In this document: positions 569 to 57,365 of the stretch, one piece after another
How positions within the stretch are numbered: position 1 is the stretch's first letter
Layout: the number at the start of each line of letters is the position of its first letter
IMG/VR virus record: IMGVR_UViG_3300002835_000007
Coordinates: 1-64,000 of that record
DNA length: 64,000 nt
Strand: one strand, 5' to 3'
The notes under the pieces: model-generated
The model's database searches: none
Seen by the model: only the letters and a program-made list of their open reading frames with translations
Told to the model about the DNA's origin: nothing
Made by a program: the position numbers and the translations under genes

Positions 569-640
569 TGGACTGTAACTCAGAGGCAGAGTGCTGATTT
601 TACATGTCAGAAGTCGGGATTTCGAAATTCCCCAGTCCAA
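569..640 (+). tRNA. tRNA-Val(TAC)
   Basis: TGGACTG/CAGTCCA acceptor; CTGAT-TTTACAT-GTCAG anticodon arm; TTCGAAA T loop. Confidence 0.85.
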
Positions 641-654
641 CAAAAATTAAGAAC

Positions 655-834
655 ATGGAAAACTTAGGTCATTCAATATCAGACAATATTGAACATATGA
701 AAAACATACGTGAAGAAATAATTCAGAAATGGATTGATAGTGGGTTACTGGATAATCTAAATGTAACTGGAAAGAAAAACATAGCAGAACTATATGAGGG
801 TTGTGCAACAAGTATGATTAAAGATAAAAAATAG
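655..834 (+). CDS. small protein resembling the N-terminus of gp23-type major capsid proteins
   Basis: ATG 655 after tRNA; KWIDSGLLDNL...NIAELYE pattern recalled from large-phage MCP N-termini. Confidence 0.5.
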   Translation: MENLGHSISDNIEHMKNIREEIIQKWIDSGLLDNLNVTGKKNIAELYEGCATSMIKDKK

Positions 835-905
835 GGGTATAGCTCAGCGGTAGCAGCAATTGCCTTACATGCAATAGGTCGGGGGTTCGAATCCCTCTAC
901 CCCTA
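833..905 (+). tRNA. tRNA-Val(TAC)
   Basis: AGGGGTA/TACCCCT; ATTGC-CTTACAT-GCAAT; GGTTCGAATCC. Confidence 0.93.
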
Positions 906-1034
906 CAGCAGACACACATACCTCTCGAAGAAGTACAAATTGTGTTAATTAAGAATTGATTGACGAATGCATGAACTAGTCAATGATTAATTACGGTGAC
1001 GGGATAGACCACACGGTCAAATGTCTATCCAAAT

Positions 1035-1116
1035 GCCGAGGTGGTGGAATGGTAGACACGAGGGACTTAAAATCCCTTGCCCGTAGGGCGTGAGGGTTCG
1101 AGTCCCTCTCTCGGTA
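1035..1116 (+). tRNA. tRNA-Leu(TAA)
   Basis: GCCGAGG/TCTCGGT; AGGGA-CTTAAAA-TCCCT; long variable arm. Confidence 0.95.
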
Positions 1117-1124
1117 CAACATAT

Positions 1125-1207
1125 GCGGATATGGGGGAATGGTAGACCCGTTGGTCTTAGAAACCAATGCTGAAATATGCGTGTCAGTTCGAGTCTGACT
1201 ATCCGTA
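1125..1207 (+). tRNA. tRNA-Leu(TAG)
   Basis: GCGGATA/TATCCGT; TTGGT-CTTAGAA-ACCAA; long variable arm. Confidence 0.95.
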
Positions 1208-1246
1208 CAAAAAAGTTTTTTTAATAGTGTTACTATATTTATAAGT

Positions 1247-1750
1247 ATGAAAAAACGTATAAAACAATTATTAAGAGAAAATCTAGATAATATTAATGAA
1301 ATTGGTGATTTAAGTTATTATCCACCTTATATTAAAGAAGGAGGTTTTAATATAATAAAGTATGGTGATGATTATGAGATTTCATTTGATGAAGAATCTG
1401 GATATGACGTTAAAATAGATTTTATTGACTTAGTATCAAATAAAAAAACTTATGTTTTAGCGTTTTCTGTTGGTAATAATATGATTCAAAAATTTAAAAC
1501 AACACCTAAAGCGTATTTTAAAATTTTATCTACTGTTGGTGAAGCTTTATTACAATTTTTATCAGAATACGAACCTTTCTTAATTATCATTAATGGTCAA
1601 GATAAGGAAGGTTCAAAAGGTCAAAAAGATTTTATATATAAAAACATTGTAGAAAATAATAAATCTAGACTTAATGAAAAAGGTTACGCATTTGAGGTAG
1701 GGCCTACAAGTGTTAAAATATTTAAAGAAGAAAAAAACGATAATTTATAA
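1247..1750 (+). CDS. hypothetical protein with N-terminal IKQLLRE motif
   Basis: ORF track; preceded by ATATTTAT at 1235-1242. Confidence 0.75.
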   Translation: MKKRIKQLLRENLDNINEIGDLSYYPPYIKEGGFNIIKYGDDYEISFDEESGYDVKIDFIDLVSNKKTYVLAFSVGNNMIQKFKTTPKAYFKILSTVGEALLQFLSEYEPFLIIINGQDKEGSKGQKDFIYKNIVENNKSRLNEKGYAFEVGPTSVKIFKEEKNDNL

Positions 1751-1767
1751 AAAAAAAATAAAAAAAC

Positions 1768-1796
1768 TTGACAATTAAACGAACTTTTAGTATATT
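1768..1796 (+). promoter_or_regulatory. promoter upstream of leader peptide 1
   Basis: TTGACA-N17-TATATT. Confidence 0.7.
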
Positions 1797-1825
1797 AGTG
1801 TATATTTAATTAATAAAGATAAAAA

Positions 1826-1915
1826 ATGAGAACAATTAATAACATATTTGAGTTTGACTTCTTCGCAGCCGAGGCCGATTTTAGCCTAGGGAGGTCAACC
1901 TATGTATGTAGTTAA
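1826..1915 (+). CDS. attenuator leader peptide 1 (MRTINNIFEFDFFAAEADFSLGRSTYVCS)
   Basis: 29-codon ORF with A-rich start; 12 consecutive F/E/D/A codons; overlaps antiterminator strand AGGTCAACCT 1892-1901. Confidence 0.8.
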   Translation: MRTINNIFEFDFFAAEADFSLGRSTYVCS

Positions 1916-1939
1916 TTGTAAGTAACTATACTATATTTG

Positions 1940-1970
1940 AAAGGTTGACCTAAACAGTCAACCTTTTTTT
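1940..1970 (+). terminator. intrinsic terminator of attenuator 1
   Basis: AAAGGTTGAC-CTAAACA-GTCAACCTTT then T-run; 5' arm also perfectly complementary to 1892-1901. Confidence 0.85.
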
Positions 1971-2007
1971 GTTTATATAGGTTTGAAAAAAAAAAATATT
2001 ACAAAAA

Positions 2008-2128
2008 GTTTGGAAGTTTAAAAAATAGTTCATACATTTGTAAAACAAAATTAAAGAAAACGTTCTTTGAAAGATTAAAAAAAAAAATAAAAAACATTTG
2101 CAAATTAAAAATATTATTTATACATTTG
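2008..2128 (+). promoter_or_regulatory. tandem Bacteroidota-type promoters with boxA-like element
   Basis: TTTG...TACATTTG at 2033-2040 and 2121-2128; GTTCTTTGAAAG at 2062-2073. Confidence 0.7.
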
Positions 2129-2142
2129 TAATATCAAAATAA

Positions 2143-2215
2143 GGACAGATAGCTCAGTTGGTAGAGCATCGCACTGAAGATGCGAGTGTCGGGGGTTCGA
2201 TTCCCTCTCTGTCCA
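2143..2215 (+). tRNA. tRNA-Phe(GAA)
   Basis: GGACAGA/TCTGTCC; TCGCA-CTGAAGA-TGCGA. Confidence 0.96.
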
Positions 2216-2223
2216 CAAAACAA

Positions 2224-2297
2224 CGCCCGTTGGACAAGCGGTTTAAGTCGTCTCCCTTTCACGGAGAAGAGCATGGGTTCGAATCCCATACGGGTGA
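2224..2297 (+). tRNA. tRNA-Glu(TTC)
   Basis: CGCCCGT/ACGGGTG; TCTCC-CTTTCAC-GGAGA. Confidence 0.95.
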
Positions 2298-2346
2298 CCT
2301 TGACTTTTTTGTACCTTGTCGTATATTTATTGTAAAAGATAGATAT

Positions 2347-2988
2347 ATGGCAAGAGCAGAAAAGAAAATACATTACCTATATAAAACTACTTGTTTCATA
2401 ACTGGTAGATGGTATATAGGAATGCACAGCACACATAACTTAGAAGATGGTTATATGGGTAGTGGAAAACGATTAAGGTATTCTATACGTAAGTATGGAG
2501 TTGATAATCATAAAAAAGAGATTTTAGAGTTCTTTGAGAGTAGGGAATTATTAATTGAAGCTGAAATAAAAGCAATCACTGAAGATATGGTTACAGATAA
2601 AAACTGTATGAATCTTAAATTAGGTGGCCAAGGAGGTTTTATTAATGAAGAACATAAACAAAAATTCATAAATTCAGATGGACCTAAAAATTTTGCTAAA
2701 AGGTTGATTGAGGATGAAGAATTTAGATTAAAACATTTTGCGATTATATCTGAAAGGATGAAGAAAACACATGCAAATGGTAAAATTAAATATGATACAT
2801 TCAAAGGTAAACAACATTCAGATGAAACTAAACAAAAAATGAGTGAATCATCTAAAGGTAAAGGTATTGGTGAATCAAATAGTCAATACGGTACTTGTTG
2901 GATAACCAAAGAGAGTGTTAATAAAAAAATTAAAAAAGAAGACCTTGACACATACCTAATTGAAGGATGGGTTAAAGGTAGAAGATAA
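2347..2988 (+). CDS. GIY-YIG homing endonuclease (Seg-like) with NUMOD3 motif
   Basis: YLYKTT...WYIGMHST...YMGSG; FKGKQHSDETKQKMSES; true start ATG 2347. Confidence 0.9.
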   Translation: MARAEKKIHYLYKTTCFITGRWYIGMHSTHNLEDGYMGSGKRLRYSIRKYGVDNHKKEILEFFESRELLIEAEIKAITEDMVTDKNCMNLKLGGQGGFINEEHKQKFINSDGPKNFAKRLIEDEEFRLKHFAIISERMKKTHANGKIKYDTFKGKQHSDETKQKMSESSKGKGIGESNSQYGTCWITKESVNKKIKKEDLDTYLIEGWVKGRR

Positions 2989-3056
2989 ACGCTCGCACTG
3001 ATAGTTACGTATCGGTGGAGAGGATGAGTATGACAATCTGGAAAGACAGATATTAC

Positions 3057-3131
3057 GGTCTATTGGTCCAATGGCTAGGATACGGCACTGTCTATGCTGT
3101 GGTGAGAGTTCAATTCTCTCATAGACCGCCA
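3057..3131 (+). tRNA. tRNA-Asp(GTC)
   Basis: GGTCTAT/ATAGACC-G-CCA; CGGCA-CTGTCTA-TGCTG. Confidence 0.9.
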
Positions 3132-3216
3132 ATTGTAAATACCCAGTGGTTTGGTGGGTATGGATACTAAAAGCTATTAAGAGGTTCGAAACTTGAAAAT
3201 AGTTACCAAACCATAT

Positions 3217-3290
3217 GGGGCAGCATGTACCAAGGCTGGCGTTTCTCCCTTGCAAGGAGAGAGTGGAGAGTTCGATTCTCTTCTGCTCCA
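3217..3290 (+). tRNA. tRNA-Ala(TGC), atypical D arm
   Basis: GGGGCAG/CTGCTCC with G3:U70; TCTCC-CTTGCAA-GGAGA. Confidence 0.8.
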
Positions 3291-3291
3291 C

Positions 3292-3480
3292 ATGGAAAAA
3301 TTTAGTTTTGAGGAAGGTATAGATTATTACCTAGAAAAAGGGAAGATAGTTTATACTGAACGCTATCTAAAAAAAAGAGGGACTTGCTGCGGCTCTGGTT
3401 GCAGACATTGTGTTTTCGACCCACCTTATACGAAAGGTAACAAAGTTTTAAAAGAAAACACAAACAAAAATTTGGATTAA
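3292..3480 (+). CDS. DUF5522-like Cys-rich protein
   Basis: YLKKRGTCCGSGCRHC motif; ATG 3292. Confidence 0.8.
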   Translation: MEKFSFEEGIDYYLEKGKIVYTERYLKKRGTCCGSGCRHCVFDPPYTKGNKVLKENTNKNLD

Positions 3481-3744
3481 TCAATAATTTAATGTACATT
3501 TGTAATATGAAAAAAGAAACTAAAATAAAAGTGTTACAGTTAATCGCTAACTATATAGTTAGCATGTTAGAAAATTCACGTAGTGAAGGTATGTTCTATT
3601 ATTATTTTGAAATTGGTGCAATGGTTAATGCATATGCAATTGAATACCACGACATTTATTTAGATTAAAAAAAAAATTAAAAAACATTTGGATTATTAAA
3701 ATATTATCCATACATTTGTAGTATAAATTTAAAAAGTAAATAAA

Positions 3745-4071
3745 ATGAGTAAGTTTGTAAAAACGTTATCAGCATCTAACGCTGAAATCAAAGAAGCAAG
3801 AGCTAAGATGTTAGCTGACACTACTGTATTAGAAGTAGAATCTTTCGTTCAAGCATTGAAGAAAGAAAAATTAGAGTTGCAAAACAAGTTGGCTAACCTA
3901 ACTGACTTAGCACCAGACAACACGTATAGCTTACGTCCAGGTTCAAAAGATTTTGACGCTAAATTATGGGTACGTGAATTACATTCAACTAGAATGGAAA
4001 TCACTCTTAAAGAAATGGAGTTGGAAGAAGCTCAATCAATCTTCAACGAGTGGTTTGGTGAAGAAAAGTAA
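3745..4071 (+). CDS. coiled-coil hypothetical protein
   Basis: ORF track; promoter TACATTTG 3711-3718. Confidence 0.75.
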   Translation: MSKFVKTLSASNAEIKEARAKMLADTTVLEVESFVQALKKEKLELQNKLANLTDLAPDNTYSLRPGSKDFDAKLWVRELHSTRMEITLKEMELEEAQSIFNEWFGEEK

Positions 4072-4074
4072 TCA

Positions 4075-4710
4075 ATGTATTTTAAATTAGATAAATCTAA
4101 AAAAATGAAAAGAGTTTACATTGCAAAGTCCAATAAGGCGAACCCTAACTTAGTTTCAAGAGTTCGCCAAACTCTTTCCGTGTTTGATGTTCAAATCGTT
4201 GAGTTCACTGGTGGTACTTATTCACATGACTTATTATTATCGTGTGATGAGTTGTATGTCATCCCAGATTTAAGTGGTTCTTTTGATGATGATTATACTA
4301 ATATTTGGTCTGTGTCTATCGGTAAAGGTCTGTATGAACAGATACATGCGTTTCACAATAAAACATCAAATAATGATATTTTTATTGTGACCGATTTTGA
4401 TAACAATGTGGGTGTTGGTGGTTTTTATTATGAAGAAAATGATGATGATTTCTATTCAATTTATATAGAAAATGAAAATGACTATGTTGATTATGCGTAT
4501 CTAACAATTAATACAGAAAACGCAACAATAAATCCATGGGACTTATACCATTTTGTTTTAGAATCAAATGAACTTAAAGATGAATCATGGGTATCAAATG
4601 CATTGAATGAATCAATTGCTGAACATAAAACGTGGAAAGAAAAAGCAGCAAATAAAAAATTTTTATATATTGTTGCAAAAAAACTTGCAAAGTTAAAATA
4701 TAGTTTGTAA
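4075..4710 (+). CDS. hypothetical protein
   Basis: ORF track. Confidence 0.7.
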   Translation: MYFKLDKSKKMKRVYIAKSNKANPNLVSRVRQTLSVFDVQIVEFTGGTYSHDLLLSCDELYVIPDLSGSFDDDYTNIWSVSIGKGLYEQIHAFHNKTSNNDIFIVTDFDNNVGVGGFYYEENDDDFYSIYIENENDYVDYAYLTINTENATINPWDLYHFVLESNELKDESWVSNALNESIAEHKTWKEKAANKKFLYIVAKKLAKLKYSL

Positions 4711-4729
4711 ATTTGTAAAAAAAGTAAAT

Positions 4730-5695
4730 ATGAATAATGAAAGTAAAACAGTCGATATCGATATCGACAAACAAAAATTTGAAGAGTTAATTGATTTGTT
4801 AGATGCGTACACAACTATCGGGTCAAAAGTTGGTCGTGATGTAATTGACGGTCATGAGTGTGAAGTAAGGTTTGTTTTAGTAACCCCAGATTTAGCGGCT
4901 GAAATACTAGAAAATTACAATAGCGAAAATAGACCTTTTTCACAAAGTAATGTTGCTAAATTAGTTAAAGAAATTAATTCTGGTAATTGGTCATTCAATG
5001 GAGAACCAATATCTTTCAACAGTAAAGCTAATGTGTCAAATGGTCAACACAGATTACAAGCAATTGTTTTAACTGGTATTGCATTGAGATTTTTAGTTAC
5101 AACTGGTCTTGACCCTAAAAGTTTTGCTACTATGGATAACGGTAGAAAAAGAACTGGTTCTGATGTTTTAGCTATTGCTGGTGTTGGTAATTATACAACT
5201 GCTGCATCTGTTTGTAAATTTGTTTACTCTTTTAAAAACGGAAATTTTGGTTCTGTTTATAGAGCATCAGAAAGTAGAACTTTGACAAATACTCAAATTG
5301 AAAGTTACTACACAACATTAACAAATGTTGATGAGAGCATTAAATTTGGTGCTGCTATGTCGAAAAAAAGTAATGGGTTATTGAAAGCAACTATTTTAGG
5401 TGGGTTTCATTATTTGTTATCTGAGATTGATGAAGTTTTAGCTGATGAGTTTTTAACTAAACTATCAACTGGTATCGATTTAAAACAAGGTTCACCAATT
5501 ATTTCATTAAGAAATAGATTACTTAAATCTACAACTGATGATAATTACAGAATCACTAGTGAAACTTTAATGAAATTAATCGCATATAGTTGGGAGAAAT
5601 TCGTTAAAAACGAAACTGTTAAGAATCTTAAATTACCAGAAAACTATGAAATTAATCTTTATGGTTCATCAAACCAAAAAACATTAAATTTCTAA
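4730..5695 (+). CDS. ParB/Srx-like N-terminal domain protein
   Basis: VTPDLA..NRP..W.FNGEPI..NGQHRL. Confidence 0.7.
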   Translation: MNNESKTVDIDIDKQKFEELIDLLDAYTTIGSKVGRDVIDGHECEVRFVLVTPDLAAEILENYNSENRPFSQSNVAKLVKEINSGNWSFNGEPISFNSKANVSNGQHRLQAIVLTGIALRFLVTTGLDPKSFATMDNGRKRTGSDVLAIAGVGNYTTAASVCKFVYSFKNGNFGSVYRASESRTLTNTQIESYYTTLTNVDESIKFGAAMSKKSNGLLKATILGGFHYLLSEIDEVLADEFLTKLSTGIDLKQGSPIISLRNRLLKSTTDDNYRITSETLMKLIAYSWEKFVKNETVKNLKLPENYEINLYGSSNQKTLNF

Positions 5696-5731
5696 AAAAA
5701 CGTAACCGAAGATAGTTTTTCGGTTACACTT

Positions 5732-5805
5732 GGACCTCTAGCTCATTCGGTTAGAGCAACTGACTCATAATCAGTAGGTGCTTGGTTCGATTCCAAGGTG
5801 GTCCA
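5732..5805 (+). tRNA. tRNA-CAT, probably Ile2 (lysidine type)
   Basis: GGACC.../...GGTCC-A acceptor typical of Ile2; ACTGA-CTCATAA-TCAGT. Confidence 0.85.
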
Positions 5806-5932
5806 CATTTAGGTGATTCTCAGTAATGGAGATAGTAGAATCTTTAGAGTATTGAACATGAAAAGGCTGGCAAACCGTTAAATTATTTCTCAGTAGTGCC
5901 TCACATAACCACTATGATACTCACTAAATTAC

Positions 5933-6006
5933 GGTTCCGTAGCTCAGCTGGATAGAGCCACGCACTTCTAATGCGTAGGTCACACGTTCGAATCGTGTCG
6001 GAATCA
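5933..6006 (+). tRNA. tRNA-Arg(TCT)
   Basis: GGTTCCG/CGGAATC; ACGCA-CTTCTAA-TGCGT. Confidence 0.95.
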
Positions 6007-6012
6007 CAATAA

Positions 6013-6138
6013 TGGAAGGTAGCCCAATTGGTAGAGGCAGCGGAATGCAAAAAGATTAATCTGTTTTAAAGATTAAGTTCAGCAATTTAAACGCTATTTA
6101 GGAACCGAAAAGTGTTAGTTCGAATCTAACCCTTCCGA
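6013..6138 (+). ncRNA. tRNA body with ~50-nt CAGCAA module inserted in the anticodon arm
   Basis: TGGAAGG/CCTTCCG acceptor, D arm, GTTAG-TTCGAAT-CTAAC T arm; insert TTAATCT/AGATTAA hairpin + GTTCAGCAA. Confidence 0.75.
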
Positions 6139-6446
6139 CAAAAGAAGAGTGAGCAGCATTAGCCAAGTTGGAACGAGTACCAGCGTGAAGGTCAAAAATA
6201 CTCGGCTCATGACTTCTGAAAAAAAGTTTGAAAAAAACTTGCAAATGTAAAATAAAGTTAGTACATTTGTAGTATAGAAAAAGTTCTTTGAAAAGTATTA
6301 GAAATGAGGGTGTTACATTCTTAAATTTCTTTAAAAAAGTTACTAAAAAACTTGACATTTGCTTAAAAATGTCGTATATTAGTAACATAAAAATTGGATT
6401 AATTATCATAAAATAAAAAAGTAAAAAAAAAAAGAAAAAAAAGAGT

Positions 6447-7082
6447 ATGGCAACACCAAAAAGTACACCAGCAAGAAAAGCTTCTGCAAATACAGAAGTA
6501 GTTTTAGGACAAGCAGCAGCACAAATCGCTAAGGCTGTTAACGAATTAAAAGCAGCAACTGCAACAGTTTCTACTTTATCTGACCAGTCAGAGCAATTAA
6601 CTATGTTAGTAGCTAACAAAGAGGAGTCAATCGCTTCATTAGAAGTAGAGTACGCTGAGAAACGTAGACAATATGACGTTGAGTTAGAATTGTCTTTCAA
6701 AGCTAACCAAGAAAGAGTTGTAAATGAGTGGTTACGTTCAAACGGATACACATCTATTTCAACAGCTGACTTAACAACTTTACGTTCTGATTTAGAAACT
6801 TCTAGAACAAACACTGAAGCAACAGTTAAGAAAGAAGTAGCTACTGTAGCTGCAACTTTAAAATCTCAGTACGAGAATGAAATTAAATTAATTCACTCTG
6901 AGAACAAAGCTGTTGCTGCTGAAAACGCTGCAAAAATTGGTACGTTAGCAACACAAAACTCGTTCTTACAAGAACAAGTTACTAAGTTGTACGAACAATT
7001 AGATGCTGAGCGTTCTGCTGGTATCGAAAGAGCGAAAGCTGGGTCAGTAGGTTCAATTAACGTTGCACCAGCTGGTAAGTAA
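6447..7082 (+). CDS. coiled-coil hypothetical protein
   Basis: ORF track; Ala/Glu/Lys-rich heptads. Confidence 0.8.
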   Translation: MATPKSTPARKASANTEVVLGQAAAQIAKAVNELKAATATVSTLSDQSEQLTMLVANKEESIASLEVEYAEKRRQYDVELELSFKANQERVVNEWLRSNGYTSISTADLTTLRSDLETSRTNTEATVKKEVATVAATLKSQYENEIKLIHSENKAVAAENAAKIGTLATQNSFLQEQVTKLYEQLDAERSAGIERAKAGSVGSINVAPAGK

Positions 7083-7126
7083 TTAGCAATGATATTCTAC
7101 GTGGGGAACTGCGTAGAATGTTACAA

Positions 7127-7267
7127 GGGTAAAAAGATTATTTCAGCAACCAAAAATTCAAGCCTTGTTAATGCCGTGGTCGTGGGTTCGAATCCCACAC
7201 TGTCCATGATAATGGGCGGTTAGCTCAGCTGGTTAGAGCACGTATGAAAAAAAGTTAATCTTGTCCC
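7127..7267 (+). ncRNA. circularly permuted tRNA-like RNA (T arm-acceptor-D arm) closed by CAGCAA stem
   Basis: AAGATTA(7134)/TAATCTT(7256); T arm 7182-7198; ACTGTCC(7199)/GGGCGGT(7214); D arm GCTC/GAGC. Confidence 0.8.
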
Positions 7268-7296
7268 CCAAATTGGAGTCCTCTGCTCCTTAAACA

Positions 7297-7437
7297 GAGT
7301 AATTAAAAGATTGTTTCAGCAATTAAACTCAAAAATTGTATGGATAACAAGCGGTCTGGGTTCGAATCCCAGCATGTCCTAACAGAGGTGTGGGCGTGTG
7401 GTGTAATGGTAGCACAAAAAGAGCAATCTTGATACTC
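7297..7437 (+). ncRNA. second circularly permuted tRNA-like RNA closed by CAGCAA stem
   Basis: AAGATTG(7307)/CAATCTT(7424); T arm 7356-7372; CATGTCC(7373)/GGGCGTG(7392); D arm GTG-TAATGGTAG-CAC. Confidence 0.8.
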
Positions 7438-7441
7438 AAAT

Positions 7442-7519
7442 ATGGCGTTAGCTCAGCTGGTAGAGCACTGTTGGTTTTAACTGGCAGATGGGTCGTAGGT
7501 TTGAATCCTACACGCTGTA
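7442..7519 (+). pseudogene. aberrant tRNA (Lys-like loop, 7-bp anticodon stem)
   Basis: Normal D arm and GTAGG-TTTGAAT-CCTAC T arm; CTGTTGG-TTTTAA-CTGGCAG arm; weak acceptor. Confidence 0.6.
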
Positions 7520-7681
7520 CAATGTTTCTTTGTTTTATAAAACAAAGTGGTGGTAGTCTGGGGTGTTAAAACTCTCGGTCCCAAAAAAATAAGGTTGGTA
7601 ATTTACTGTAAAGCTATGGCTTCCTTCAAAAAAGTGGCACTATCGTTTGGTAGTGTCATTTTTTATTTGTACCTTTGTCAA

Positions 7682-15531: not shown

Positions 15532-15627
15532 GTTTTAGGTACCTATGCCTCTTAAAAAATAGGAACGTTATTTGACATGTTGGTTTATTTTGGGTTGTAC
15601 ATATACAATAGTAGGAATGTAAATTAT

Positions 15628-15701
15628 CGAGTAGTATAGGAGTGGTTTATCTAGCGGCATTTGGAATGCCGAGCACGTTGGTTCGAATCCAACCTATTCG
15701 A
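15628..15701 (+). tRNA. tRNA-Pro(TGG)
   Basis: CGAGTAG/CTATTCG; CGGCA-TTTGGAA-TGCCG. Confidence 0.92.
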
Positions 15702-15751
15702 CCCTAATGGTTTCCCATAAGCCATTAAAAAAACAAGTTATGGGAAGTTAT

Positions 15752-15825
15752 TTTCCGATAGACAAACTGGCAAAGTCACTCGCCTTTGAAGTGAGAATTT
15801 GGGGGTTCGAAGCCCTCTCGGAAAT
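15752..15825 (+). tRNA. tRNA-Gln(TTG)
   Basis: TTTCCGA/TCGGAAA; CTCGC-CTTTGAA-GTGAG. Confidence 0.9.
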
Positions 15826-15883
15826 CAAAAAAAATAAAAAAACTTGCATATGTTAAAAATAGTTCATACATTTGTAAAAGAAA

Positions 15884-15957
15884 AATAAAAGATAGCTTCA
15901 GCAATTTCACAACTATCAAACTTTTAATTTGAATCAGAAAATGCTATCTTGATTTAT
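15884..15957 (+). ncRNA. CAGCAA-stem RNA displaying a lone Lys(UUU) anticodon hairpin
   Basis: AAGATAGC(15889)/GCTATCTT(15943), TTCAGCAA, TCAAA-CTTTTAA-TTTGA 15916-15932; own promoter TACATTTG 15867. Confidence 0.7.
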
Positions 15958-16043
15958 TGGAGGGTGGCCGAGTGGTTAAAGGCGGCAGACTGTAAATCTG
16001 TTCTCGTAAGGGTACGGGGGTTCGAATCCCTCCCCTCCAACCA
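15958..16043 (+). tRNA. tRNA-Tyr(GTA)
   Basis: GCAGA-CTGTAAA-TCTGT; long variable arm; ACCA end. Confidence 0.96.
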
Positions 16044-16051
16044 AAAATTAT

Positions 16052-16124
16052 GCCTTTGTAGCACAGCTGGTAGTGCACTTCACTTGTAATGAAGGGGTCG
16101 TAGGTTCGAATCCTATCAAAGGCT
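16052..16124 (+). tRNA. tRNA-Thr(TGT)
   Basis: GCCTTTG/CAAAGGC; CTTCA-CTTGTAA-TGAAG. Confidence 0.96.
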
Positions 16125-16216
16125 CACGTGTTAACTAGGGTCGAGCCACATTTTGCCTCGGTTAACAATAGAAGAAAGAACCTAGAGGTGGCCGTGACTG
16201 TCTTTCTTCGAAATTT

Positions 16217-16289
16217 GCAGATATCGTATAATGGTTTATTATATTAGCCTTCCAAGCCTAGGATTTCAGTTCGATTCTGAATATCTGCT
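16217..16289 (+). tRNA. tRNA-Gly(TCC), imperfect anticodon stem
   Basis: GCAGATA/TATCTGC-T; loop CTTCCAA. Confidence 0.8.
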
Positions 16290-16348
16290 CAAAAAGAGGA
16301 ATAACAAGTGTGGATGCCTCAAGGTACAGCTGACCTACCACACTCTAT

Positions 16349-16420
16349 GCGAGAGTAGCTCAGTGGTAGAGCATCTGGTTACCAACCAGAGGGTCGTGGG
16401 TTCGAATCCCATCTCTCGCT
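16349..16420 (+). tRNA. tRNA-Gly(ACC)
   Basis: GCGAGAG/CTCTCGC-T Gly-type body; TCTGG-TTACCAA-CCAGA. Confidence 0.9.
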
Positions 16421-16428
16421 CAAAATAT

Positions 16429-16555
16429 GGGGGTGTTGAAATGTTAGATAAATCACATTCTGCCTTTTAGATTAAAGAATGTTTGCAGCAAAATCAAAAT
16501 TATTCACGCAAACTGTAAATTTGATAAAACGTTGGTGCAATTCCAGCCGCCCCCA
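16429..16555 (+). ncRNA. tRNA-like ends enclosing CAGCAA module and Tyr(GUA) anticodon hairpin
   Basis: GGGGGTG/CGCCCCC-A; ACATTCT/AGAATGT + TTGCAGCAA; CAAA-CTGTAAA-TTTG; GTTGG-TGCAATT-CCAGC. Confidence 0.7.
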
Positions 16556-16678
16556 CTAAAATAAAATTATAAAAAACTTAAAAAATAAAAACTATGAAAA
16601 ATTCTATCAACATTAAGCGAAAGATAAAACGATAAGGCACTCGGCCAAGCTGGTTACGAGTGTCAATGGAAAAAACAC

Positions 16679-16752
16679 GCCTTCGTAGCTCAGCTGGATA
16701 GAGCACTCCACTTTTAATGGAGGGGTCATGGGTTCGAGTCCCATCGGGGGTA
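16679..16752 (+). tRNA. tRNA-Lys(TTT)
   Basis: CTCCA-CTTTTAA-TGGAG; full cloverleaf. Confidence 0.94.
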
Positions 16753-16757
16753 CATAT

Positions 16758-16830
16758 GTACTCGTAGCTTAGTTGGTAGAGCACTCCGCTTTTAACGGAG
16801 GGGTCAAGAGTTCGAATCTCTTCGGGTACA
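16758..16830 (+). tRNA. tRNA-Lys(TTT)
   Basis: GTACTCG/CGGGTAC; CTCCG-CTTTTAA-CGGAG. Confidence 0.94.
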
Positions 16831-16861
16831 CAACTATTAATAAACCAACATGTAACGTATT

Positions 16862-25439: not shown

Positions 25440-27059
25440 ATGCAATCAGAAACTAGAAGATTAAAAAGAAGTTTAGCACTTAAAGAAGTGATTAAAACTA
25501 GATTGGCAGAAGCAATTAAAAACAAAGATTGGTCTTCAATCGAAACATTAGAAGGTCTTATCACAAAAGTATTGGATAAACCTAACAACCTTGTACTTAT
25601 GGGTGATGCGTATAAATACTCACACCATAAATTCTATGAGGATAACACAACAACAGTTTATTCATACATGGAGTCACGTGGTGGTCGTTTCCAAGAAACT
25701 GTATGGTATGGTCTTGAAATGTTCATTAAAGAATATTTAGAAGGTGTTGCAATCACACAAGAAGAATTAGATGAAGCATATGAGTACTTAGGTACTAAAC
25801 ATGGTGTATTTGGTCGTGATGATGTGTTTGATAAATCTAAATTCCAATACATTATAGATGTTCATGGTGGTAAACTACCAGTACGTATTAAAGCAGTACA
25901 AGAAGGTACAGTTGTAGGTGTTAAAAACGTTCTTATGACTATTGAGAACACTGACCCTAATTGTTATTGGTTAACTAACTTTTTAGAAACAATCATGATG
26001 CAATTATGGTATCCAATTACGGTTGCAACATTGTCACGTGAAGTTAAGAAAATTGTTATCGAATACTACCAAAAAACATCTGCGTTACCACAACACATTA
26101 TGGATACAGTTATTGAGTTCGTATTAAACGATTTCGGTTTTAGAGGTGTATCATCAGTACAATCAGCTGGTTACGGTGGTTCAGCACACTTAATTAATTT
26201 TATGGGTTCTGACACAACAGTTGCATCAAAACGTATCTGTGAATACTATAATACTGACACAATATTTGGTTTATCAGTTCCAGCAACTGAACACTCTATC
26301 ATGACAATGAAAGGTGAAGAAGGTGAAGTTGAAATGATGAGAAGAACACTTGAGAAATACCCTACTGGAATTGTAGCGTGTGTATCTGACTCTTACCACA
26401 TCTTACGTGCATGTTCTGAGAAATGGGGAACTGAGTTACGTGATTTGATTTTATCAAGACCATCAGAACCTGGAAATCAACTGGTTATTCGTCCAGATAG
26501 TGGTCACGTTGTCAACACATTAAAAGAAGTGTTTGCTATATTGTTTGATAAATTTGGTTACACTGTGAATGATAAAGGGTTCAAATTGTTACCACCACAA
26601 GTTCGTGTAATTCAAGGTGATGGTGTAAACATCAATTCAATTCGTGAGATTTACGAAGAATTATACAGATTAGGTATTTCTGCTGAGAACATCGTGTTTG
26701 GTATGGGTGGTAAATTGTTACAAGCTGATATTAATAGAGATACACAAAACTTTGCAACTAAAGCATGTTTCGCTGTCGTAAATGGTGAACAACGTGATTT
26801 GGTTAAATCACCAACAGAAGTTGATGAAAATGGTGAATTAAAACCATCATTCAAGAAATCTAAACAAGGTCGTTTGAAGTTGGTTAAACACTATACAAAT
26901 GGTCAATACTACACTGTAACATCATTGGAAGATGGATATGAATCTGCACATGATGAATTGAGAACTATTTTTGAAGATGGTAAACTATTGGTTGAAACGA
27001 AGTTTGAAGATATTCGTAGTAGAGCTAAAATTTTTAAATTAAACGTAGAATTAGTATAA
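25440..27059 (+). CDS. nadV: nicotinamide phosphoribosyltransferase
   Basis: DAYKYSH, DFGFRG, SVPATEHS, VSDSY, IRPDSG, IQGDG, FGMGG. Confidence 0.95.
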   Translation: MQSETRRLKRSLALKEVIKTRLAEAIKNKDWSSIETLEGLITKVLDKPNNLVLMGDAYKYSHHKFYEDNTTTVYSYMESRGGRFQETVWYGLEMFIKEYLEGVAITQEELDEAYEYLGTKHGVFGRDDVFDKSKFQYIIDVHGGKLPVRIKAVQEGTVVGVKNVLMTIENTDPNCYWLTNFLETIMMQLWYPITVATLSREVKKIVIEYYQKTSALPQHIMDTVIEFVLNDFGFRGVSSVQSAGYGGSAHLINFMGSDTTVASKRICEYYNTDTIFGLSVPATEHSIMTMKGEEGEVEMMRRTLEKYPTGIVACVSDSYHILRACSEKWGTELRDLILSRPSEPGNQLVIRPDSGHVVNTLKEVFAILFDKFGYTVNDKGFKLLPPQVRVIQGDGVNINSIREIYEELYRLGISAENIVFGMGGKLLQADINRDTQNFATKACFAVVNGEQRDLVKSPTEVDENGELKPSFKKSKQGRLKLVKHYTNGQYYTVTSLEDGYESAHDELRTIFEDGKLLVETKFEDIRSRAKIFKLNVELV

Positions 27060-28586: not shown

Positions 28587-29056
28587 AAGTAATATTTTTA
28601 GATATTGATGGAGTATTAGCAACAACATCTTGTTATGGTAAAGGAAAAAACAACAAGTGGGGTGCTTATATGTTTGACCAAAAAGCTGTTGTTTATCTCA
28701 ATTTTATACTTAGTGAGACTGGTGCTGAAATCATTTTATCATCTGATTGGCGAAATCAATATACTTTGCATGAAATGCGTGAAATTTTTTGTCATAACGG
28801 AGTGTTGAAAGGTCCGATAGGGTTTACACCATCGTTAAAAACATATAAGGGTGATAATCTTGAAGGTGGTCGTGCTGATGAAATAAATGCATGGTTAGAA
28901 ATTAACGCATGGAAGAATGATATCAAATGGGTTGCCATTGATGATTTGAATATGGATGAATGGTTGTACCCTAACTTTGTTCATTGTCCTAATGAACATG
29001 AAGGAATCAAAAAACAAAACATAAAAGATAAAATAATACAAATATTAAATGGATAA
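28583..29056 (+). CDS. HAD-family protein (Swiss-Army-Knife RNA repair-like)
   Basis: FLDIDGVL, LSSDWR, R..EI..WL, AIDD. Confidence 0.85.
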   Translation: MKVIFLDIDGVLATTSCYGKGKNNKWGAYMFDQKAVVYLNFILSETGAEIILSSDWRNQYTLHEMREIFCHNGVLKGPIGFTPSLKTYKGDNLEGGRADEINAWLEINAWKNDIKWVAIDDLNMDEWLYPNFVHCPNEHEGIKKQNIKDKIIQILNG

Positions 29057-29483
29057 TTGGGATAAGAAGTTCATCAAGTTGTGTCAACACATTGCTGAAT
29101 GGAGCAAGGATAAAAATAAAAAAGTTGGTGCTGTAATAGTTGATAATGACAATGTAGTTATATCAATGGGTTATAATGGAATACCAAGAGGTTGTGATGA
29201 TACTGAAGAGTGTCGTTATGAAAGACCAACAAAATATTTGTTCACAGAGCATGCTGAACGAAATGCAATATACCATGCAGCAAGACATGGTGTATCATTG
29301 AAAGATTGTAAAATGTATGTAACTTTGTTCCCATGTGCTGATTGTGCAAGAGCAATGATTCAATCTGGAATAACAAAAATAATAGCACCAGAACCAAATT
29401 TAGACCACGAAGTATGGGGTGTACACTTCAAGGCTGCGATTCAAATGATGGAGGAAGCTAATATCGAAATAATTTTAATTTAA
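29049..29483 (+). CDS. dCMP deaminase
   Basis: GYNG, HAERNAI, PCADC. Confidence 0.93.
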   Translation: MDNWDKKFIKLCQHIAEWSKDKNKKVGAVIVDNDNVVISMGYNGIPRGCDDTEECRYERPTKYLFTEHAERNAIYHAARHGVSLKDCKMYVTLFPCADCARAMIQSGITKIIAPEPNLDHEVWGVHFKAAIQMMEEANIEIILI

Positions 29484-42487: not shown

Positions 42488-44473
42488 ATGATTAAAATAA
42501 ATGATATAATAGAAGGGAAGTTAAGTATGAACGCAAGTGGTTCTGCTTATTTGGTGAGTGAGAATATACCAAAAGATATTTACATACACAAATCTAAAAC
42601 AAACAAAGCGTTACATTTAGATAAAGTTAAAATAGAGGTAATCCATGGACAAGGACGTTCTATAGAAGGTAAAGTAATTGAAATTGTAGAACGATTTAGA
42701 ACAGAATTTGTAGGTACAATACAAATAAGTGAGAAGTTCGCTTTCTTTGTACCAGATTCAAATAAAATAATAATTGATTTCTTTATACCTTTGAATAAAT
42801 TAAATGGTGCTATACATGGTCAAAAGGTTGTTGCAGCATTGACTGAATGGAAAGAAGACGCTAAGAACCCTAATGGTAAAATAGTTAGAGTTATTGGTAA
42901 TTCTGGTGAACACGAAACGGAAATACATTCAATCTTAGAAGAATACGGATTACCTTATGATTTCCCAGATGATGTAATAGCAGAGTCTGAAGCAATATCA
43001 GAAGAAATACTACAATCTGAAATAGAGAAACGTATAGATATGCGTGATGTGTTGACATTTACCATTGACCCACATGATGCAAAAGATTTTGATGATGCGT
43101 TGAGTGTTAGATGGGTTGATGGAGTATTGGAAGTTGGTGTTCATATCGCTGATGTGGCACACTACATGCGACCAGAAACTGAATTGGATAGAGAAGCGTT
43201 TGCTAGAGGAACTAGTGTTTACCTAGTGGATAGATGCGTGCCAATGATACCAGAGAAGCTTTCTAACGGACTTTGTTCACTAAGACCACACGAAGATAAG
43301 CTTTGCTTTTCAGTGGTGTTTAAAATCGACCAAAATGGACGTGTGATGGATGAGTGGTTTGGTAGAACAGTAATACATTCTGACCATAGATTTACATATG
43401 AAGAAGCACAATCGATAATTGAGGTAGGTAAACTACCTAAAGATGCTATCGCTGAAGGTGAAACCTTAATATTTGAAAAATCTGGGTTAGGTTCTGTTGT
43501 TGGATGGGATAAAGCAACCAATTTAGGTAATGCTATATTGGTGTTGGATAAATACGCTAAGAAAATGCGTAAGGTAAGATTTAGCAAAGGTTCTATTTCA
43601 TTTGACAAACATGAAGTTAGGTTCAAGTTAGATGAAAACAACAAACCAATTGATATTATATTCAAGATTGGTAAGGATTCCAACAAATTGATTGAAGAAT
43701 ACATGTTATTGGCTAACAGACATGTTGCTCAGTTTATTAATCAAAAAGGTTTACCAATGGTTAACAGAGCTCATGATAAGCCAGATGAAGCTAAATTAGA
43801 AAGTCTTAAAGATTTCATTCATCAATTTGGTTATGAGATTAAAGTTGACACACCAGAAGAAACAACTAAATCTTTGAATAAGTTGCTGCGTGATGTAAGA
43901 GGTACTAGTGAAGAAGAAATGATTACTAATCTTGTAGTTAGAACAATGCAGAAAGCTGATTATAGAACAAAGAATATTGGTCACTATGGTTTAGGTTTCA
44001 AACATTATGCTCACTTTACAAGTCCAATCAGACGTTATCCAGATGTTATTGTACATAGATTGTTAGCGTTGTATTTAGATGATACTAGAAAGACTAACCC
44101 TAACATTGCTAAATTAGATGGTAAGTGTACACATTTATCTGAAAGAGAGAAGAAAGCACAAAAAGCTGAACGTGATAGCATTAAGTTCATGCAATGTGTT
44201 TATATGTCAGATAAGGTAGGTAAAGTTTACAAAGGTATGGTAACTAGTGTTGCTGAATTTGGGTTGTTTATTACTATCGAAGAGAATGGTTGTGATGGGT
44301 TAGTTAAATTATCTGACATAATGGGTGACACATTTGTTGCGGATACTGAAAATTACCGAGTTAAAGGTACTAAAACTGGTGCTTATTTACGTTTGGGGGA
44401 TGAAGTTCATGTAGTCGTAACGTCTGTTGATATTGAAAAAAAGAACATTAATTTATCATTAATTAACCTATAG
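42488..44473 (+). CDS. rnr: ribonuclease R
   Basis: TIDPHDAKDFDDA, RGTSVYL, IEEYMLLAN, HFTSPIRRYPD, C-terminal S1. Confidence 0.95.
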   Translation: MIKINDIIEGKLSMNASGSAYLVSENIPKDIYIHKSKTNKALHLDKVKIEVIHGQGRSIEGKVIEIVERFRTEFVGTIQISEKFAFFVPDSNKIIIDFFIPLNKLNGAIHGQKVVAALTEWKEDAKNPNGKIVRVIGNSGEHETEIHSILEEYGLPYDFPDDVIAESEAISEEILQSEIEKRIDMRDVLTFTIDPHDAKDFDDALSVRWVDGVLEVGVHIADVAHYMRPETELDREAFARGTSVYLVDRCVPMIPEKLSNGLCSLRPHEDKLCFSVVFKIDQNGRVMDEWFGRTVIHSDHRFTYEEAQSIIEVGKLPKDAIAEGETLIFEKSGLGSVVGWDKATNLGNAILVLDKYAKKMRKVRFSKGSISFDKHEVRFKLDENNKPIDIIFKIGKDSNKLIEEYMLLANRHVAQFINQKGLPMVNRAHDKPDEAKLESLKDFIHQFGYEIKVDTPEETTKSLNKLLRDVRGTSEEEMITNLVVRTMQKADYRTKNIGHYGLGFKHYAHFTSPIRRYPDVIVHRLLALYLDDTRKTNPNIAKLDGKCTHLSEREKKAQKAERDSIKFMQCVYMSDKVGKVYKGMVTSVAEFGLFITIEENGCDGLVKLSDIMGDTFVADTENYRVKGTKTGAYLRLGDEVHVVVTSVDIEKKNINLSLINL

Positions 44474-56878: not shown

Positions 56879-57365
56879 AAGTTAATGAATAATTTATTTT
56901 AGATAAAATTGAAATTTGTCCATTTTAAATTAGGAATATCTAAATAAGATTCTTACATTTGTCAAATCTAATTAAAACTTTATATCATGTCAAGAAAGAA
57001 AAAAACATTTGATGTATTAGCATTTAAAGAATACGTCAACATTCAACTAGCAAGAACTGATGAACATGCAACAGAAGACTTTAAATGTGGTTTGTCTGTC
57101 GCTTTGGGAGAAGTGTTGCATCGTACTGGTAACTATAATGGGTTTACCCATTTGTATTGGAACGAAATTGGTTGGCAAGAGTGGAGAACTATTGGTAAAG
57201 AAACCGAAGTTTGGGAAGAAAAGAAATTGTTTATCTACGGAACACCAGACAGCAAATATAAAGGAAGTAGATACGCTTTAAGATATTATTAATGATAATA
57301 GGGGACGCTGAAAACCTAGACAGAGTAGGCAAATAATAAAAGTTAAATAAAAAAAAAAGAAAAAA

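Follow-up and report, generated by a model that had tools for sequence, protein, structure and literature searches.

A conserved tRNA-Gly gene with the anticodon ACC recurs in AT-rich phages

Introduction

A phage tRNA-Gly gene with the anticodon ACC raises the question of whether a glycine tRNA with adenosine at position 34 can be a natural and working molecule, and what such a tRNA could offer to a phage. Bacterial tRNAs with A-starting (ANN) anticodons other than ACG are very rare (bioRxiv 10.64898/2026.05.15.725136), and the first-pass annotation of this locus agrees with the literature in calling A34 rare in bacteria outside tRNA-Arg(ACG). Among the four-codon boxes, Gly-tRNA(ACC) is the only ANN tRNA described as universally absent, which has been ascribed to poor deamination together with an anticodon loop intolerant of A34 (bioRxiv 10.64898/2026.05.15.725136; PMC4928997). 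We found no earlier description of a natural phage Gly(ACC) in the literature, and neither of these two sources mentions phages in this connection. The gene described here is a phage tRNA with an anticodon thought non-existent in nature, and it is both conserved within its lineage and recurrent among other phages.

The gene, its phage and its tRNA array

The window analysed, meaning the whole stretch of 64,000 nucleotides, corresponds to the opening 64 kb of an IMG/VR contig 205,931 nt in length, which identifies the source as a jumbo phage. The features needed below are as follows.

569..7520, + strand, upstream tRNA cluster (ARAGORN)
15627..16831, + strand, tRNA array with Pro(UGG), Gln(UUG), Tyr(GUA), Thr(UGU), Gly(UCC), Gly(ACC) and two Lys(UUU) (ARAGORN)
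16217..16290, + strand, tRNA-Gly(UCC), the sole other Gly isoacceptor of the window (ARAGORN; Rfam 51.2 bits)
16349..16420, + strand, tRNA-Gly(ACC) gene, 72 nt including the discriminator U73, with no encoded CCA (ARAGORN and Rfam RF00005)
16381..16383, + strand, anticodon ACC, in which A34 is base 16381 (ARAGORN anticodon offset 33)

ARAGORN called tRNA-Gly(acc) at 16349-16421, and the Rfam tRNA model RF00005 matched with 73.6 bits (E 3e-14; gathering score 29), the top score among the 19 tRNA matches of the window, which has 20 Rfam matches including one DUF805b RNA. The cloverleaf comprises a 7-bp acceptor stem (GCGAGAG/CTCTCGC), a D stem (GCTC/GAGC), an anticodon stem (TCTGG/CCAGA), a variable loop of 5 nt and a T stem (GTGGG/CCCAT), and together with the score this structure places the gene within the RF00005 family. 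The anticodon loop is TTACCAA (U32, U33, A34, C35, C36, A37, A38), and the discriminator is T (U73) at 16420. Compared with the list of bacterial tRNA-Gly identity elements in PMC9976931, the set is complete in the sequence: U73, G1-C72, C2-G71, C35, C36 and the (G10-Y25):G45 triple, here with G10-C25. Position 34 is not among the determinants of GlyRS, and human GlyRS charges a tRNA-Gly(ACC) mutant (PMC4928997). The gene is thus confirmed as a canonical, well-formed tRNA-Gly with the anticodon ACC. The Gly-type cloverleaf, U73 and the TT-ACC-AA loop named in the first-pass annotation were borne out by the sequence and by both programs, as were all its other factual statements.

The window has 31% GC with every gene on the + strand. 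Deposited phages include no close relative at the nucleotide level; the proteins of the window reach at best ~45% identity to those of Flavobacteriia phages (Maribacter phage Panino, Flavobacterium elemo phages), via a T5 A1-like DNA transfer protein, and such indirect hints point to Flavobacteriia as the host group. The window also encodes a 661-aa RNase R-like exoribonuclease (42488-44473; phrog_13933), whose nearest relatives, at 47% identity, belong to uncultured phages of >600 kb, as well as a nicotinamide phosphoribosyltransferase (25440-27059; phrog_448, E 1e-147) and a dCMP deaminase (29049-29483), genes of nucleotide and NAD metabolism such as large phages typically carry. The DUF805b RNA motif (RF02914) was matched at 57298-57331 with 35.8 bits against a gathering score of 35.6. 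Two irregular tRNA-like sequences lie in the region of the upstream cluster. At 7442-7520, a tRNA-like gene (Rfam 40.5 bits) has an anticodon arm with a long stem and a short U-rich loop, for which ARAGORN gives a four-base anticodon (ttta), making it a candidate Lys-like, suppressor or frameshift-type tRNA. At 6013-6138, a 126-nt Rfam tRNA match (34 bits) without an ARAGORN call has tRNA-like ends and an insert of ~50 nt in the anticodon region, with a GCA (Cys) triplet at the would-be anticodon site. Scanning the tRNA array for promoters and terminators gave matches no more frequent than in shuffled sequence.

The order of the array at 15627..16831 is kept in relatives (ARAGORN, loci L004-L018), including the order Gly(UCC), Gly(ACC), Lys, Lys. 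Across both clusters, the four-codon boxes represented (Val, Ala, Pro, Thr and Leu-CUN) have U34 tRNAs only (ARAGORN), and glycine, with UCC plus ACC, is the exception. In well-studied bacteria, U34 of tRNA-Gly bears an mnm5-type modification and reads A and G only; in other four-codon boxes, U34 tRNAs have a broader reading. The restricted U34 of tRNA-Gly might explain why glycine alone has a second isoacceptor, with tRNA-Gly(UCC) as the presumed reader of GGA and GGG. We also observed that tRNA-Gly(UCC) at 16217-16290 has C32 (loop CTTCCAA by the ARAGORN anticodon offset) and an irregular anticodon stem; C32 has been linked to the reading of all four Gly codons by the tRNA-Gly(UCC) of Mycoplasma.

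A34 is conserved within the lineage

A sequencing error or a private mutation would be expected to show itself in relatives with GCC. We scanned IMG/VR and a metagenome collection with the 31-nt anticodon arm, leaving position 34 open. A34 was found on this backbone in 8 contigs in IMG/VR, where one further match was an Erwinia-phage-like Gly(CCC), and in 10 contigs in the metagenome collection, where 17 more matches had C34, another acceptor and T arm, and contigs of 49-67% GC. Neither scan with this arm returned G34 or T34 on the backbone. After removal of duplicates, ~15 independent contigs carry an identical or near-identical tRNA-Gly(ACC), and A34 is retained in relatives from 100% down to ~47-56% amino-acid identity (AAI) of shared ORFs. 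The stems of these relatives contain compensatory changes, as in L008 and L012, where G7A is matched by C66U.

A34 is therefore neither an error nor a private mutation: the check for GCC relatives left the first-pass call standing, as every contig with this backbone has A34. An artefact or a dead copy could be imagined, since several cellular Gly(ACC) calls, such as a Shewanella copy described below, resemble private single-base changes. The same base in independent assemblies from many metagenomes, the best tRNA score of the window, and intact, covarying stems refute this reading for the phage gene.

Two relatives depart from this pattern. In L018 (58% AAI), a Gly(GCC) gene occupies the same slot, after Gly-UCC and before Lys-UUU; we rejected it as a simple point-mutant ortholog of the ACC tRNA, as its anticodon stem differs. 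In L050 (73% AAI), a decayed Gly(ACC) at 7156-7240 retains the 5' part through the T arm with the 3' acceptor strand missing and without an ARAGORN call, so the tRNA-Gly(ACC) gene can be lost.

With C34, though never with G34, the identical 31-nt anticodon arm is found in the Gly(CCC) genes of 17 loci within L204-L229 and of Erwinia phage Asesino. The latter is the best deposited match to the ACC tRNA (89%; L001:1501-1576), and the 17 C34 contigs (49-67% GC), mostly GC-rich, are presumably bacterial. Judging from the shared arm, the ACC gene may descend from a tRNA of CCC type and not of GCC type.

Gly(ACC) recurs in other phages and is sporadic in cells

For a wider search we used a generic Gly(ACC) pattern consisting of GGTAGAGC, six free bases, TTACCAA, 12-14 free bases and RGTTCRA. 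The counts that follow are lower bounds because the pattern requires GGTAGAGC, TTACCAA and RGTTCRA; it leaves the stems free but fixes the loop as well as some D-arm and T-arm positions, whose invariance is therefore uninformative. In all, the pattern matches 63 of 2.9 million viral contigs, 62 of which ARAGORN confirmed as Gly(acc), with 29 distinct sequences. When the 29 sequences were aligned on the cloverleaf, 99.3% of cells paired, and double changes were found in 13 of the 21 pairs, including all five pairs of the anticodon stem, far above shuffled and slid controls. Because their stems pair and covary far above the controls, the recurrent phage Gly(ACC) genes are, to judge from their sequences, working tRNAs. 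No viral match was found for the C32 loop variant (CTACCAA), and the two most frequent ACC tRNA types besides this one have no near-identical copy among deposited sequences.

When tRNAs are masked and loci are joined by no fewer than three shared ORFs, the ACC loci fall into at least six multi-member protein-sharing groups plus singletons. Grouping by any one shared ORF proved misleading, since a mobile GIY-YIG homing endonuclease then supplies the link. Members of this endonuclease family (~212-232 aa) lie beside the tRNA arrays in 15 otherwise unrelated Gly(ACC) loci (for example L004, L007, L008 and L029), and the enzyme could move tRNA genes between phages. Many ACC contigs have one or two tRNAs only in the stretch fetched, Gly(ACC) among them. 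Other A34 tRNAs were also seen in these loci: Thr(AGU) stands directly before Gly(ACC), besides Thr(UGU), at L008:5283-5356 (+) and L012:108-181 (-), and ARAGORN called Ser(AGA) in L044 and Pro(AGG) in L066, all of four-codon boxes. The use of A34 in AT-rich phages may thus extend beyond glycine.

In cellular genomes, the same pattern matched only sporadically, in 10 of 32.2 million contigs across 185,579 bacterial and archaeal species (one genome each), in keeping with the rarity in bacteria that the first-pass annotation had stated. With its 63 matches in 2.9 million contigs, the viral collection is thereby ~70 times richer per contig. One cellular match is a fragment of a Flavobacteriales MAG, which is probably a binned phage piece because its tRNA is identical to a viral one. 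The Shewanella Gly(ACC) differs from two tandem GCC copies at position 34 only, and most other cellular matches are singletons in contigs of 41-64% GC. In Clostridium sp. K13 (L194, NZ_JAASHM010000008.1), a Gly(ACC) at 4837-4908 lies in the tRNA cluster of a 30% GC contig (Leu, Gly-ACC, Gly-UCC, Gly-UCC, Lys), with no GCC within the 8 kb fetched, and may be a genuine chromosomal case.

ACC replaces GCC in AT-rich, GGT-rich genomes

The 78 + strand ORFs of at least 100 aa in the window contain 690 GGT (71%), 176 GGA (18%), 84 GGG (9%) and 25 GGC (3%) codons for glycine, which agrees with the first-pass statement that GGT dominates, and GGT makes up 62-77% of Gly codons in the loci of relatives (counted where there are at least 100 Gly codons). 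The ACC tRNA is hence cognate to a heavily used phage codon, GGT, as codon compensation demands. Not one of 55 viral ACC loci has ACC and GCC together; in 30 of them ACC is the sole Gly tRNA, and 25 have UCC besides. We compared these loci with 98 GCC loci that share the same tRNA frame and are among the first 120 matches listed. Median GC is 0.335 in the ACC loci and 0.413 in the GCC loci (p 7e-19), and the median GGT/GGC ratio is 7.2 and 1.7, respectively (p 1.5e-11), or 7.4 and 4.2 when only loci below 40% GC are taken (p 0.007). These statistics use crude codon counts taken from raw ORFs, and shared ancestry makes the loci non-independent. Almost all ACC contigs have 27-38% GC.

The first-pass annotation had proposed adaptation to phage codon bias. 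This proposal gains correlative support: ACC replaces GCC, almost only in AT-rich contigs in which GGT is far above GGC. As a sufficient cause it fails, because L018 has the same bias (GGT 64%, GGC 4%) yet keeps GCC, so that codon bias alone is insufficient to force ACC.

Proposed decoding and the possibility of drift

The phage tRNA-Gly(ACC) fills the place that tRNA-Gly(GCC) takes in other phage tRNA sets, and we infer that it would be functional, with its genomically encoded A34 kept by selection. It would read GGU through a Watson-Crick A34:U3 pair and GGC only weakly, the neighbouring tRNA-Gly(UCC) would cover GGA and GGG, and A34 would most likely stay unmodified. Because 71% of the phage glycines are GGU and 3% are GGC, the change to A34 might be beneficial, or at least free of cost. 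Taken as one explanation, these steps form the account that we favour with moderate confidence. Experimental precedents fit this pattern: in Boren 1993, as cited in PMC11066159, an E. coli Gly-tRNA(ACC) was a strong reader of GGU and a weak one of GGC, with some competition on GGA and GGG, and an orthogonal tRNA(ACC) in E. coli has a U:C preference of 76:24 and no inosine (PMC11066159). Against the account stand L018, which has GCC under the same bias, and L050, with its decayed copy; moreover, overexpression of Gly-tRNA(ACC) slowed the growth of E. coli (bioRxiv 10.64898/2026.05.15.725136), and molecular dynamics suggested that A34 destabilises the anticodon loop of tRNA-Gly (PMC4928997).

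The main rival is tolerated drift under AT pressure, in which AT-biased mutation would have turned G34 (or C34) into A34 with no advantage, and the change would persist since GGC is so rare. The near confinement of ACC to contigs of 27-38% GC fits such drift, as do L018, which functions with GCC under the same codon bias, the loss of the gene in L050, and the finding that genomic B34A substitutions in E. coli are mostly neutral (bioRxiv 10.64898/2026.05.15.725136). However, A34 is invariant in ~15 contigs of the lineage, to ~50% AAI, without any G/A polymorphism, and it sits on 29 diverged backbones with compensatory stem evolution. It is also hard to square a valueless gene with phages that carry only one or two tRNAs and have Gly(ACC) among them. 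We therefore consider drift unlikely, if still a serious competitor.

Is A34 converted to inosine?

A34 could instead be converted to inosine by a deaminase of undescribed specificity, either a relaxed variant of the host TadA or a phage enzyme encoded beyond the window. As ICC, the anticodon would read GGU, GGC and GGA, ~92% of the Gly codons. If true, the phage would have the first inosine-34 glycine tRNA described from nature, in the one four-codon box thought never to have I34. There are precedents for a widened specificity, as the use of TadA has extended to Leu(AAG) in some bacteria, a TadA homologue is present in 88% of the species with non-ACG ANN tRNAs (bioRxiv 10.64898/2026.05.15.725136), and human ADAT partly deaminates tRNA-Gly(ACC) in vitro (PMC4928997). 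The window covers 64 kb, and another 142 kb of the genome lies beyond it.

The known specificity of the enzyme argues otherwise. E. coli TadA is very specific for the Arg2 loop: it left an ACC anticodon unedited also when this was placed in an Arg2-type loop, and other anticodons were no longer edited once position 32, 37 or 38 was changed (PMC11066159). The phage loop differs from the TadA substrate loop (C32, U33, A34, C35, G36, A37, A38) at position 32 (U instead of C) and position 36 (C instead of G). Boren 1993, as cited in bioRxiv 10.64898/2026.05.15.725136, found Gly-tRNA(ACC) unmodified. No deaminase motif was found in 803 kb around the ACC tRNAs. The window contains one zinc-deaminase ORF, at 29049-29483, with an HAE...PCxxC motif; we rejected it as a tRNA deaminase, as it matches Pfam dCMP_cyt_deam_1 (7e-27) and its best solved relatives are dCMP deaminases (5e-35), with TadA at 1e-5. 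Because E. coli TadA spares ACC and no tRNA deaminase is encoded nearby, A34 is probably unmodified, and we regard conversion to inosine as improbable.

Possible escape from a tRNA-targeting defence

The first-pass annotation had offered escape from a nuclease as its second possibility: a toxin or nuclease of the host or of a competitor would read the GCC loop, and the A34 version would go unrecognised and still decode the main Gly codon. Anticodon-loop variants that evade tRNA-targeting defences are documented for other phage tRNAs (PMC10264068, PMC11555353, PMC11464382), and tRNA-Gly(ACC) belongs to a large array, a setting that has been linked to counter-defence. On the other hand, an anticodon nuclease specific for Gly(GCC) is absent from the literature searched, and no case of Gly or of position 34 is found in the eLife paper. 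Escape would also give no reason for ACC to be confined to AT-rich, GGT-skewed genomes, and the relative L018 has GCC. We rate this explanation as very doubtful, slightly below the conversion to inosine.

The natural Gly(ACC) genes provide material for testing the decoding by A34 in a native backbone, its editing and the conditions that permit it, for which an extreme usage of NNU over NNC and a short-lived expression during infection are candidates. For annotators, the findings are a caution that Gly(ACC) calls in phage genomes should not be treated as errors.

Comparison with known systems

The nearest counterparts are the phage tRNA-Gly(GCC) genes, such as those of L018 and Ruegeria phage RpAliso, which share the gene type and the Gly identity elements with the ACC gene, and in L018 also the array slot. 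The Gly(GCC) of RpAliso even has an anticodon arm nearly identical to that of the ACC tRNA. They differ in having G34 instead of A34, and the two types are mutually exclusive in viral loci.

Among bacterial tRNAs, tRNA-Arg(ACG) and the tRNA-Leu(AAG) of Lactobacillales resemble Gly(ACC) in that an A-starting anticodon replaces the G34 isoacceptor of a four-codon box. Both are TadA substrates whose A34 becomes I34, whereas ACC is not edited by E. coli TadA; the Arg2 loop departs from the phage loop at the two positions, 32 and 36, given above. The defence-evading phage tRNAs (van den Berg et al. 2023, PMC10264068) are likewise found in a large array and have an anticodon loop unlike that of the usual cellular isoacceptor. 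In Gly(ACC), however, the change lies in the anticodon itself and alters decoding, and a nuclease targeting tRNA-Gly(GCC) is absent from the literature searched.

Another parallel is the tRNA-Thr(AGU) of Mycoplasma, which has a natural unmodified A34, serves a four-codon box in an AT-rich genome and is accompanied by a U34 isoacceptor. The Mycoplasma pair of Thr(AGU) and Thr(UGU) is mirrored by the same two tRNAs in L008 and L012. The differences are the amino acid and the setting in a reduced cellular genome; furthermore, Thr(AGU) is conserved in bacteria but Gly(ACC) is not.

An E. coli Gly-tRNA(ACC) was engineered by Boren et al. (1993) and Raval et al. (2026 preprint), and an orthogonal tRNA(ACC) is described in PMC11066159; these have the same anticodon as the phage gene, on a bacterial-type Gly or test backbone. 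The engineered tRNAs have been shown to be charged and active in elongation, with an unmodified A34 and a preference for GGU over GGC. They are laboratory mutants, whereas the phage tRNA is natural, conserved and recurrent. Overexpression of the Gly-tRNA(ACC) mutant harmed E. coli, but these phages maintain their gene.
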